Source: Oopsacas minuta
Taxonomy: Eukaryota; Animalia; Porifera
Assembly: GCA_024704765.1 (NCBI GenBank)
Contig: JAKMXF010000221.1
Coordinates: forward strand, 62,001-126,000
DNA: 64,000 nt
Direction: 5' to 3'
Shown here: positions 2,019 through 6,782 of the stretch, one piece after another
Layout of the letters: every line of letters starts with the position of its first letter
Position numbering within the stretch: the stretch's first letter is position 1
Notes under the pieces: model-generated
The model's database searches: none
Told to the model about the DNA's origin: nothing
Seen by the model: only the letters and a program-made list of their open reading frames with translations
Translations under genes and position numbers: made by a program

Positions 2019-4535
2019 TCATTCAAACTGTTCTCCCTCAAAGAAACACAGGAGTTTGTCCAACTCGTAATTATTCTCCAGGAGGTCTAGTAGCGTGTTA
2101 ACACGACTCTTCACATTCATACCTTTGAACTTAAACTTATCAATAAACAGATCTGTAATCATTCCATAAAGACGTTCTAAGTGACAAGGTTGCTGTTTAA
2201 ATTCTTCTCTCAGCTGTTGAGCATTATCCAGAATGTACAGATAATCAGCTGCAAGGAATGATATATCCTGTTCTTGTGCCTTGAGCTCCTGGAGAGCTTC
2301 TATTATATGAATTCGTTTAGCTAGTAGTAACTGGTAGTCTAGCTTAGGATGTATCAGCTGTAAAGTGTAGGGTACTGATTGGTCATTAATCACACAACTT
2401 ATTTCTAGTTTTATGCTATTCTTGGTAGCTTCTCTTGTTAGCACATCCTACAACAGTAATAATATAATAAGAATTACATAGTGCATCCATGGTATATGTT
2501 ACCTTTAGTATAGATATAGTAGAGACATTGTCAGAGCGAAATACTGCTTCTCCAGCTCTGTAGAAAGCATCGAGTTGTGTGTCTAAGAATGTGGACTTGA
2601 AGTGGATGGAGGCGGAGTCCTCGGTGGGAGGTCTCTCAGGGACATCAGGGAGACAATTGTAGATCCAGGAATGCACCTCACTGAGGCTAAAAGGACCACC
2701 TAGTGTGAGAACGTTGAGAGGGCGAGACGAGTCGAACAGGTGAGTACGTTGGTGTAGAGAGAGAGGCTTAATCAGAAATTCTTTCCTGCGACAAGACTTG
2801 GGATGCATACGAGGAGTTATGTATACCTAATACAATGGAGAATGGACTAACGTTAATCCTAATACAATAAATATGAAACTACAGATACACACGGTATCTT
2901 AGGATAACGAGATTGTATCATAAATTAGTATTGTGTTACCTGTAGAGTGCCATACTGTCCCTCAATAGAGCGTAGCTTGAGCTCCATACGAGTAGTACTA
3001 CTTTGACATCTGTAAGTAGCGAGCAAGTAGTTACCGTGATCAGGATCACACGGACAATGACTGACAACAGCTGTGTTCTTATCAGAGTCTAACAGGTCAA
3101 TTGGGACATTACTCTGTAGCACTACACTCTCTATAGGAACGTGTAATTCTACTGAGAGTGTGTATGAAGCATCTTCTTGTATGAGAGTAAATTTAGTACT
3201 AACTGAGAATTTAGGGAGAGCAGAGACAGCTGTTTTAGACTGAGCAGACTGTTCATAACTATCTCTACCTCTTTGTACATTAGTTTCTAGCTCTTCTACT
3301 TCCTTCTTTAATAAGTCAATACGAGCCTAAACATTAATATGAAATATAACAAATTTTTTCTCAGATTTGGTCATTGATAATAAAAGACTAGTATTATTGA
3401 ATTTTATAGAACCATACAGTGTTAAGATAAACGCATTAAACAACTTTCCTGGAGTTCTGGATCAACTGACTCCAGACATGTATTCCCCATATGCACTCCT
3501 CTTGTCTGAGGAGCACTGCTCATAGCTAGGATCTTACCAGAGTACGTGCTAACCACAGCCTCAGGATGGTAAGCCTGTGATACCATGCCTCCCTGAATAC
3601 TAGTCACACCCTCAGAGAGGGAGTGGGAGAATATTAACTGAGGTTCTCCCACCTCATCCAGAGCGTATACCTCAATCTCTCCATCATCTCTAGCAACTAG
3701 GATATCTAGTGACCCGTCACGTGTCATGTCAAACATGTCTAAGTCTGAGATCCCACCCAGTCTCTTGTCATTACTCAGATCCCATCTGTGTATCGGTGTC
3801 TCCTTACCTAGTTTAACTAATCCGATTTTTCCATCATACGTCCCATACAATACCTAATAAAATTCGTAATAGTTATCCTTGGTATATAAGAAGTTAACGT
3901 ACTTCGTCATTACTCTCTCCTCCTGTATGGCTGTAGAGAAGGAGACAAGAAGGAGCACCTGGTACCTCTACCTCGTAGAACATTTCTGAATCCTCCATCA
4001 GACGTAGAACTCTATCCTGACAAGCTAATACAGTGTAGACGTGTGTAGAACCAGGGATAGGTAGACGTAATAATGCATTGATTTTATCAGGTGATAAAAA
4101 GTAGTTTGCATCTTTACACTGCACATAGTGATTGAATATGTAATTACATCCAACAAGTAAGTCAGATTCTGTAGCAAATAGAGACTGTATTGAATCTGTC
4201 AGGTTCGTGTCGAAGACCAGAAACATTTTTCCTTTTTTAGTGTAACCACGGATCTCAGGACCAGCTGCTATGAATATATTCTCAGTGGTACCCTTGTCCC
4301 CGATAGAGAGACAGAGAGAGGTGATTTGTGGGCCAGGAAGACTCTTGAAGGCTAGATTAACTGTCAGGTTACGCATACCGAAACACGTCACAACTCCATC
4401 ATGATCTCCTACTACAATCTTCTGAGTAACAGGAGATGATGAAGCAGTACGTTTAGGAGTAGGTAACAACTTCATGCTACCAGGACTGGTTAAACCCAGC
4501 TGCATAAAGTCTATCCTCTTTAGAGACAATTCCAT
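2019..4535 (-). CDS. BBS7: Bardet-Biedl syndrome 7 protein (BBSome), multi-exon
   Basis: ORF pieces 3894-4535, 3422-3850, 2925-3122, 2416-2808 and 2019-2444 follow BBS7 colinearly (QKIVVGDHDGVVTCFGM, LACQDRVLR, QSNVPIDLLD, IKPLSLHQRTH, HLERLYGMITDLFIDKFKFKG). Confidence 0.97.
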
Positions 4536-4655: not shown

Positions 4656-6167
4656 TTAATACATGTCTTTACGAAACTTTCCATAGATAATAGTTATATT
4701 TTTGTCTTCTATCTTAGGTATTACTTCTTTAGCACTCTGCATTGATACAGCCATTTCTGTCTGGAAAGAACGATTGTCTCTGATATCTACTTTTCTCAGT
4801 TTTGGACAAGTTCTAACTAACTCTACTAAAGCTTCTCCTGTGATTTTAGGTAGACCCATGATATTCAAATATTTCAGATTAGGGCACATTCTATGCATAT
4901 TAAGGAGTGTACGGTCTGTCAGGTGCTTACAGTAGCTCAGGTCTAAATACTGTATCTTGGTTAGTTTGTGGAAGAGAGTGTCCAGTTTCTGGTCTGTGAT
5001 TATATAAGAACAATCTTTGAGTGTAAGACATTCAAGATTGGGACATCTCCGACTGAGTAGAAGTAAAGTAGATTCTGTCACGAAGAAGAACTCCAGACTG
5101 AGTCTAGTAAGCGTCTTGCCGAGAACACATTTTAGAATGGAATTGTTGAATTTTCGCTGACTTTGTAACCGCTTTAACATTAACCGCATAAGATATTCAT
5201 CTTGAAACTCTAGTAGATCAAAGTTCCTGATGTTATCACAGACATATCTCAATGTTATCTCCATTAGCCTCAATACCTTGTAGGTAATACATCAATGAAT
5301 GAAGTAATTATACAAATGAAACAATCAAGTTCAATGTGTTATACTTGTTAACCATTATAGTATAATTATTATAATAAATACAGATTAATTGATTCATATG
5401 ATTATACCTTAGAACCTTCGTGTCTAGGACTGCGATCAAACTTCCTACTATAACAAGCTCTAACTAATTTTTTCTCAGATTCATCTCTTATTTCAAATCG
5501 CTTCTGCCCGCGAGAAGATGTGGATTCTGTAATTTCTCTAAGGATAAATTCAATTTGTGACTTAGCGAGGAGAGGGTGCTGACAGAGATCACTCAAGTTA
5601 ACCCAACCTCCCTCTTCTACAGCTAATCCTTCTACCTAGAAATACATAATATTTTAATAATATTGTTTACTATTAATTATTCAAATCATTACTGTTAATG
5701 AAAAACAGAAAAACAACACATGGATAAAGTAAATAATCATAATAAACTGAGAATGACTTAGTTATTGAACAATCATCTTTTCGCAATAACTACTAATAAT
5801 TTGGTAGTAATCACCAGATGCTGAATTTTCTAAAGTTCATAAATACAAGTAAAATAAATCAATTATCATATTGAATTACTAGCTTAAGTGATCATACGCA
5901 ATCATAAGCTAATGTATAAATTTATGAATTATTTCTTATCTCTTAGCATTCGTGGAATATTTCGACAGATACGAACATGAGTTTAAACCTACTTGAACTG
6001 GAAATTATTTATTTTTACGTATAATAATATCGTCAGGTGGATTTGTTCTGTATTATTTAGCATTTTATTGTTATATTAGCAAATCTTACCTCAGCTCCAT
6101 ACCGCAATAGGTATGCTAATTTTCTCCCCAATTTGACTTGTTTCTCCATAATTGTAGCTTCATCCAT
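4656..6167 (-). CDS. 308-aa protein with an N-terminal Tpt1/KptA-like lobe and C-terminal Cys-containing LRRs (AMN1/FBXL-like)
   Basis: Exons 6167-6090 (26 codons), 5635-5408 (76 codons) and 5276-4656 join by phase-0 GT-AG introns: MDEATIMEKQVKLGRKLAYLLRYGAE|VEGLAVEEGGWVNLSDL...QKRFEI...LVRACYSRK...|VLRLMEITL...LRRs (LxxLxLxxC). Confidence 0.75.
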
Positions 6168-6782
6168 CGCATCGGATAATTGCTATCTCTACACTAATTT
6201 GCGCTAGATAATACACGAAAATATTCAAGCAGAAGGAATAGCCACAATATTGTTGCTGTATTTCAGCATTAAGAAGAGTAAACAAAATTAGTTTACTTGT
6301 TCTCGACATTTTGTGCATTAAAATGTCTATCCCATGAAAAATATACCGTAAATTAGTAGTTACTCGGCAGATATTAACGATAGAAAATGCAGGATAATGT
6401 ATTTTAAATATTTTAGGTGTTAATGGATAGATTACAAAATAATTATAAGAAAAACAAAATTATCTGGATTGAAATTCAATCTTGTTTACTGAATTGTAAT
6501 AATTGGCTTAATAGTTAAGGTTTTGAAGAGAAATGAACTCTCAATAATTGGAAGTCATAACACGTTTAGTGACGATTGCCAGCCAACTCTAACCTATTCT
6601 AACCTGCACCAAACCAACTCGCGATAAGCTAACTAGCTACAATTCTAAGTGGTCATAAAGTATATTTTGGGTGAGTGAATGAAGAAATAAGTTATTTGAC
6701 AAAACACAAAGATAGGTTAGGATTAGGTACGAATTGAATGATCCAAGTCGACTGAAGCAATTTGTACAGTAACAATAATTTA

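Follow-up and report, generated by a model that had tools for sequence, protein, structure and literature searches.

A Tpt1-type RNA lobe joined to leucine-rich repeats in the sponge Oopsacas minuta and in other animals

What becomes of the RNA 2'-phosphotransferase Tpt1/TRPT1 when its RNA-binding lobe is kept, its nicotinamide adenine dinucleotide (NAD+) lobe is gone and leucine-rich repeats (LRRs) follow in its place? This question is raised by a minus-strand gene in a 64,000-nucleotide stretch of the genome of the glass sponge Oopsacas minuta (contig JAKMXF010000221.1, positions 62,001 to 126,000; G000:C221:62001-126000), hereafter the window, whose numbering is used for the locus. An original prediction had read the gene as a hidden fusion of a Tpt1/KptA lobe with AMN1/FBXL-type LRRs and its product as a non-catalytic reader of phosphorylated RNA ends. 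The three in-phase exons were recovered with the coordinates, phases and splice sites that it had given: the gene comprises phase-0 exons at 6167-6090 (26 codons, with the ATG at 6167), 5635-5408 (76 codons) and 5276-4656 (206 codons followed by TAA), separated by introns of 454 nt (5636..6089) and 131 nt (5277..5407). Both introns have GT-AG sites (GAG/gtaaga at 6090 and tttctag/GTA at 5635; AAG/gtataa at 5408 and ctacaag/GTA at 5276), and their GC contents of 0.24 and 0.21, respectively, compare with 0.36-0.41 in the exons. The exon translations exactly tile a public 308-amino acid (aa) O. minuta protein, P0001 (residues 1-26, 27-102 and 103-308), on which the full-length analyses were run; the exons themselves were searched one by one. 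Exon 1 had been described as missed by the open reading frame (ORF) list, which holds under a short-ORF filter; otherwise its ORF (6057-6167, 36 aa) is listed. As far as sequence can tell, O. minuta has here an intact three-exon gene of the expressed type.

The N-terminal part of P0001 keeps only the winged-helix RNA lobe of Tpt1/TRPT1. Exon 1 encodes helix alpha1 of this lobe, including KLGRKLAYLLRYGAE, and exon 2 its remainder together with a conserved linker, RKFDRSPRHEGSK. Residues 9-91 match the Tpt1 family PF01885 with an E-value of 6.7e-12, over profile positions 2-82 of 177 only, and exon 2 alone passes the Pfam gathering score (26.7 bits, E 6.7e-6, profile positions 21-82). Searches of the PDB with a narrow exon-2 profile gave chance matches only and a broader profile of the N-lobe from the whole family was required, which matched yeast (7yw4, 9.4e-13), mouse (7yw2, 3.3e-9) and human (7yw3, 6.7e-8) Tpt1 as well as archaeal and bacterial Tpt1 chains (about 1e-5); at E <= 0.01 every PDB match was a Tpt1. 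In the AlphaFold2 model of P0001 (mean predicted local distance difference test score, pLDDT, 79.8), the N-lobe consists of a helix at residues 3-24, a strand, two helices and a beta-hairpin, a layout equal to the three-helix, three-strand winged helix reported for the Tpt1 RNA lobe (PMC6333775). Residues 6-93 of the model superpose on mouse TRPT1 (7yw2) with a Z-score of 13.7 and a root-mean-square deviation of 1.5 Å over 84 residues at 27% identity; the Z-scores to human TRPT1 (7yw3) and to Pyrococcus Tpt1 with bound ligand (9ld3) are 13.4 and 11.9, respectively. Furthermore, a structure search of the ESM Atlas returned a cluster of TRPT1-like models with a template-modelling (TM) score of 0.73. 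Profile and structural matches thus both bear out the predicted Tpt1/KptA identity of the lobe.

The second lobe of the enzyme is missing, as had been proposed. The NAD+ lobe (PF01885 positions of about 85-177) was not found in P0001, in which the profile match ends at 82 and residues 103-308 are occupied by LRRs, and in most of the related proteins scanned the match likewise ends at 77-84 (at 97 in one truncated member of 197 aa). Alignment to Tpt1 also confirmed the predicted motif changes: LRH has become LLRY, KRF is retained and RANQGH reads RACYSR. The catalytic tetrad R-H-R-R reads R-Y-R-(none), with the first Arg kept and the His replaced by Tyr at R22-Y23 (codons CGG TAT, 6099..6104), the second Arg kept as R72 in the KRF motif (K71-R72-F73, 5495..5503) and the fourth Arg lost along with the NAD+ lobe. 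Since the NAD+ lobe, the fourth tetrad Arg and the tetrad His are all missing, the sequence rules out that the protein carries out the Tpt1 phosphotransferase/ADP-ribosyltransferase reaction, in line with the non-catalytic role first suggested. Thus, P0001 shares with Tpt1/KptA/TRPT1 the winged-helix fold, the motifs LS(K/R)xLxYxLR, (K)RF and RAxY and the first two Arg of the tetrad, but differs from it in the lost NAD+ lobe (about 85-177) and fourth Arg, the Tyr in place of His and the SR in place of the GH of RANQGH, and of the three features by which the enzyme family is defined it lacks two (the NAD+ lobe and the R-H-R-R tetrad).

O. minuta encodes a canonical two-lobe Tpt1/TRPT1 elsewhere in its genome (G000:C356:122134-125110, minus strand), which matches PF01885 at profile positions 2-27, 29-86, 118-143 and 138-177 and bears the LRH, QRF and RANQGH motifs. 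The first intron of this gene lies about 8-10 codons downstream of the intron 1 position of the fusion gene. Common intron positions were considered as a clue to the origin of the fusion and proved uninformative, as the introns of the canonical Tpt1 gene and of the amphioxus orthologue of the fusion lie near, not at, the sponge positions. A Trl1-type RNA ligase domain (PF09511) gave no match in the O. minuta genome and none in the control genomes either, and this result is likewise uninformative.

Exon 3 gives Pfam LRR_4 and LRR_6 matches, and in the model residues of about 103-308 fold into three cap helices followed by an LRR solenoid of the AMN1/FBXL type. The cap helices (residues 103-155, 5118..5276) form the first part of the exon, the cysteine-containing FBXL/AMN1-type LRRs follow at residues of about 156-300 (4683..5117), as seen in Pfam, PDB profile and structural matches, and a C-terminal tail with the TAA stop completes it (4656..4682). 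Profile comparison of the LRR part with the PDB identified FBXL2 (7.6e-44), FBXL17 (2.8e-30) and SKP2 (3.6e-21), in addition to KDM2B, Rad7 and ZYG11B, and the best structural matches were Rad7-Elc1 (Z 17.5), FBXL2 (17.2) and SKP2 (16.3). In language-model feature space, clusters of AMN1 homologues are the nearest named ones after the protein's own family (0.91-0.92). By structure, the family clusters apart: TM is 0.87 to a mollusc cluster of the same fusion, which ranks first in the ESM Atlas, versus 0.70 to AMN1 clusters. These results agree with the repeat class named in the original prediction. Outside its own family, the LRR part of P0001 finds its best structural TM, 0.80, in an uncharacterised fish cluster, 'si:ch211-214j8.12' (563 aa), in which the LRR module may have a diverged relative among vertebrates.

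The name under which P0001 is deposited at NCBI, 'F-box protein SKP2B-like [Oopsacas minuta]', would make it an F-box protein, a candidate that was rejected at the sequence level. An F-box or F-box-like domain was absent by Pfam in eight family members (one match at E 0.3 only), and in an hhalign comparison with the SKP2/FBXL alignment the repeats aligned and no F-box was found. The repeats thus deserve the label 'AMN1/FBXL-type LRR', but the protein does not deserve its NCBI name 'F-box protein'. The protein has in common with FBXL2, FBXL17, SKP2, KDM2B and Rad7 the cysteine-containing 26-residue LRRs (Z 16-17.5 in superposition), but the place ahead of the repeats is taken by the Tpt1 lobe and the three cap helices. 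AMN1, a small LRR-only protein, resembles it in the pattern of the N-terminal cap (L-x3-C-...-(L/F)P-x-E/N) and in having repeats of the FBXL15 type, but is about 260 aa long and lacks the Tpt1 lobe; possible kinship between the two is judged from features and TM. Other proteins in which a nucleic-acid-binding module is joined to an LRR module are NXF1 (RRM and LRR) and LRRC47 (LRR and PheRS-type B3/B4 domain). Their domains are unrelated to those of the fusion, and the likeness is one of general logic only, with no sign of common descent or function.

Is such a combination real, or could it have been put together by gene prediction? One explanation is that two neighbouring genes were merged, or that a decaying TRPT1 pseudogene fragment happens to lie beside an LRR gene, and in its favour it may be said that transcript-type support for the joined domains comes from relatives and not from O. 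minuta. All three exons were identified in four other assemblies (ENA ERZ25069837, ERZ20067936, ERZ25072730 and ERZ25072740), which are taken to be hexactinellids from their 77-89% identity and shared neighbouring genes. The exon boundaries in these assemblies are identical to those of O. minuta, with GT-AG sites, including the GT donor of exon 1, and with BBS7 likewise downstream, so that the phase-0 junctions and canonical sites are common to all of them and speak against a spurious merger. Each of the four has an exon 2 with 85.5% identity to that of O. minuta, and the ratio of nonsynonymous to synonymous substitution rates (dN/dS) is 0.02-0.08 across them wherever dS is unsaturated, from which every exon is seen to be under purifying selection. 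Moreover, contigs of about 1.3 kb, obtained in several sequencing runs of Mytilus, and a 1.6-kb contig of another species, with an A-run at its end, each hold a complete uninterrupted ORF with both domains; these contigs resemble complementary DNA (cDNA) and place the two domains on one mRNA in relatives, in keeping with the predicted splicing of exons 1 and 2 to the LRR exon. Together with same-length orthologues in many phyla, these data make an artefact or pseudogene extremely improbable; the dN/dS values and the cDNA-like contigs reject it, and it is close to refuted.

A search of other animals had been suggested, and the same fusion was found in many invertebrate phyla. A word-index search with residues 1-102 of P0001 returned P0001 alone, which reflects its limited sensitivity and not the absence of relatives, as an exhaustive search with the exon-2 profile later found the family. 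This search collected 33 proteins, all examined members of which match PF01885 only up to positions of about 77-97, and many of which have 305-335 aa with LRRs. Public proteomes contain orthologues from no fewer than eight further animal phyla, namely Cephalochordata (Branchiostoma), Hemichordata (Saccoglossus), Echinodermata (Patiria, Apostichopus), Annelida (Dimorphilus), Mollusca (Mytilus, Pinctada, Sinanodonta, Lottia, Liolophura, Elysia, Plakobranchus), Rotifera (Rotaria, Adineta), Platyhelminthes (Macrostomum) and Cnidaria (Hydractinia), and the ESM Atlas holds a 52-member mollusc cluster with PF01885 and LRR. The members, of about 305-335 aa, share a signature that P0001 fits: LAYLLRYGA, STSxRGxKRFE, VRAxYxRxFExxPxHxG, RLLExCLxYV and FPDEYL, followed by the LRRs; in a profile search, P0001 matched the family at E 4.4e-121. 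No vertebrate or arthropod member turned up in the family searches, in which absence was not rigorously tested. To judge from this distribution, the family is old, conserved and animal-wide, ranging from sponges to amphioxus, and is not specific to sponges.

The architecture proved to be neither hidden nor unique: the O. minuta protein is annotated and its orthologues are in public databases. P0001 carries the UniRef name '2'-phosphotransferase' beside its NCBI name, and the family at large is called '2'-phosphotransferase' by UniRef and 'F-box protein SKP2B-like', 'F-box/LRR-repeat protein 7-like' or 'protein AMN1 homolog' by NCBI, the last for the orthologue in Mytilus. Neither the NAD+ lobe nor an F-box was detected in any of these automatically named family proteins, and since the catalytic lobe and the F-box are missing, dozens of entries called '2'-phosphotransferase', 'SKP2B-like' or 'AMN1 homolog' are misnamed. 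No paper on the Tpt1-lobe/LRR family was found in the literature searched. The architecture thus appears to be already in public proteomes under automatic names, yet undescribed in the literature.

Some observations concern individual members and possible outliers. The dinoflagellate protein P0073 (Biecheleria cincta transcriptome, 437 aa) has a Tpt1 RNA lobe at residues 190-271 ('LRY ... KRFE ... VRALY') with the same type of His-to-Tyr change; the lobe sits in the middle of the protein, in which neither LRRs nor the NAD+ lobe were detected. An orphan lobe of the RY type may predate animals, or the transcriptome may be contaminated. In the amphioxus orthologue, an intron holds a 91%-identical extra copy of part of the LRR-cap exon (L017:3385-3453), and P0009, a 487-aa model from a hybrid amphioxus (Branchiostoma) genome, repeats the LRR-cap segment several times; the extra copies are likely to be an exon duplication or a model artefact.

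If the lobe has lost its catalytic partner, has it also lost its ligand? In Pyrococcus Tpt1 (PhoTpt1), a 2'-phosphate (2'-PO4) or 5'-PO4 is gripped by Arg14, Lys60, Arg62 and Tyr74 together with Arg133 of the NAD+ lobe, Arg14 and His15 hold the 3'-PO4, and Ser6, Lys7, Tyr11 and Phe3 contact nucleosides (PMC12170183). CthTpt1 has the same contact set in its RNA lobe (PMC6333775), and the second tetrad Arg of Tpt1 both binds the 2'-PO4 and stacks on the junction base (PMC6333775, PMC12170183). These contacts were mapped to P0001 through alignment with the Tpt1 chains of yeast, mouse, human and Pyrococcus, by which Arg14 corresponds to R22, His15 to Y23, Lys60 to Q70, Arg62 to R72, Tyr74 to Y88, Ser6 to G14, Lys7 to R15, Tyr11 to Y19 and Phe3 to V11. 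Conservation was counted in 15 family members from eight phyla: Y19 is invariant (15/15), R22 is kept in 14 members and R72 in 13, position 88 is Tyr or Phe and position 15 Lys or Arg in 13 members each, and Y23 is found in 13 (Dimorphilus still has His). Mean conservation of the four phosphate-ligand positions is 0.81, compared with a lobe average of 0.64 (p about 0.05).

Most residues of the phosphate and sugar contacts are thus retained across phyla, and for this reason the lobe most likely still binds a phosphate ligand. With R22, R72, Y88, Y19 and the basic residue 15 in place, it would bind a nucleotide or RNA bearing a phosphomonoester without turning it over. The ligand could be a 2'-PO4 junction or a 5'-PO4 end, or else a small nucleotide of a related kind. 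As a weaker inference, the LRR part would recruit or act on a protein partner, possibly the ubiquitin-ligase machinery, a link proposed because the LRRs most resemble those of cullin-RING substrate receptors. We are moderately confident in this reading, that is, of an LRR adaptor from an old animal family that carries a non-catalytic module for binding phosphorylated nucleotides or RNA. The more specific 'reader of phosphorylated RNA ends' of the original prediction is consistent with the retained, conserved phosphate ligands and is reasonable but unproven.

Several findings weigh against it. All nine Tpt1 contact positions taken together are not significantly more conserved than the remainder of the lobe (0.69 vs 0.64, p 0.24). 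Among the ligand residues, Lys60 is replaced by Gln in P0001 and varies between family members, and Tyr stands in for the tetrad His; at the position of R72, Patiria has Gln and Hydractinia has Lys. Moreover, the phosphate cage of Tpt1 is partly built by the NAD+ lobe (PhoTpt1 Arg133), which the fusion protein lacks. In the model, the linker has a pLDDT below 50 and the predicted TM score (pTM) is 0.60, so that the relative placement of the two domains is uncertain; the missing F-box likewise counts on this side with respect to the LRR part.

As an alternative, the winged helix may have lost nucleic-acid binding and serve as a protein-interaction or structural domain only, its conserved basic and aromatic residues having been put to use for a new partner. 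Winged helices are often protein-binding, and R85, R90, E/D93 and H98, which are nearly invariant and family-specific, lie in and after the RAxYxR motif, outside the known Tpt1 contacts; the linker that holds them is conserved as strongly as both domains. That these residues are the best conserved of the family-specific ones, that two ligand positions have changed from His to Tyr and from Lys to a variable residue and that the contact set as a whole is not significantly conserved all favour such a loss. However, R22, R72, Y19 and Y/F88, which are kept across phyla, are the very residues with which Tpt1 cages the phosphate and contacts the flanking ribose, and we consider complete loss of nucleic-acid binding unlikely.

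A second alternative concerns the partner of the LRRs and is a narrower form of the binder-adaptor explanation: the protein could be the substrate receptor of an Elongin BC/Cul2 (VHL-box) cullin-RING ligase whose Tpt1 lobe selects RNA-marked targets. The BC box has the consensus [STP]LxxxCxxx[AILV] and binds Elongin C. The putative BC box of the family lies in the cap helices at residues 105-114 (R/T-L-x3-C-x3-V/I/L; R-L-x3-[C/T]-x3-V at 5241-5270 on the minus strand), and F-P-D-E-Y-L, which reads FQDEYL with an invariant F-x-D at residues 126-131 in P0001 (within 5118..5276), resembles a Cul2 box. All 15 members of the family alignment have L106, F126 and D128, Cys or a small residue at position 110 and V, I or L at position 114. 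In addition, the best structural matches are cullin-RING receptors (Rad7-Elc1, FBXL2 and SKP2), residues 98-308 of the model superpose on residues 10-341 of ZYG11B in the ZYG11B-EloB-EloC complex (Z 12.8), and weak LRR_Zer-1 Pfam matches were obtained in five of eight members. Like the ZYG11/ZER1 receptors of Cul2, the fusion has a BC-box-like helix, an (F/L)P-x-E helix and then LRRs, and the structural alignment with ZYG11B-EloB-EloC starts at the BC-box region; unlike it, these receptors are much larger, contain ARM repeats and lack an RNA-binding domain, and the BC box of the fusion is a candidate at the level of a motif. The motif is short and degenerate, and AMN1-type LRR caps, which are not known to bind Elongin C, show it as well. 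In O. minuta, Thr replaces Cys at position 110 and Gln replaces Pro at position 127, and neither Pfam nor hhalign matched an F-box or a SOCS/VHL box at the profile level. On balance, a role as an Elongin BC/Cul2 receptor is distinctly unlikely.

The binder-adaptor reading can be extended into a full mechanism, in which an ancient animal adaptor would read an RNA phosphate mark via the dead Tpt1 lobe and couple it, through the BC-box-like helix and the FBXL/ZYG11-like LRRs, to cullin-RING ubiquitylation or another protein machine. The mark could be an ADP-ribosylated or 5'-PO4 end, or a 2'-PO4 that 5'-P-type RNA ligation leaves behind. We regard this extension as speculative and improbable as a whole.

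With respect to the surrounding locus, an out-of-frame ATG (6172-6170) lies 5 nt upstream of the annotated start and opens an 18-codon frame (window 6116-6172, minus strand) that overlaps the start codon and stops at TAG. The downstream neighbour on the same strand is BBS7 (window 3894-4535, minus strand, onward), whose beta-propeller begins MELSLKRIDF. The gene order of a PH-domain gene, the Tpt1-lobe/LRR gene and BBS7 is kept in the related assemblies, and RPL32 and sideroflexin come after BBS7 in those related loci that extend far enough.

Tpt1 has been studied as a two-lobe enzyme, and the role of TRPT1 in animals is, to our knowledge, not well understood either. The existence of a conserved paralogue in which the RNA lobe alone is kept and is tied to an LRR solenoid suggests that animals may 'read' as well as erase phosphate marks. 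A binder without turnover could be used as a trap and would provide a handle on the natural ligand, and the phyletic pattern of the family can be correlated with RNA-ligation pathways. If the adaptor mechanism is true, the family would form a direct link from RNA repair or splicing intermediates to protein turnover.

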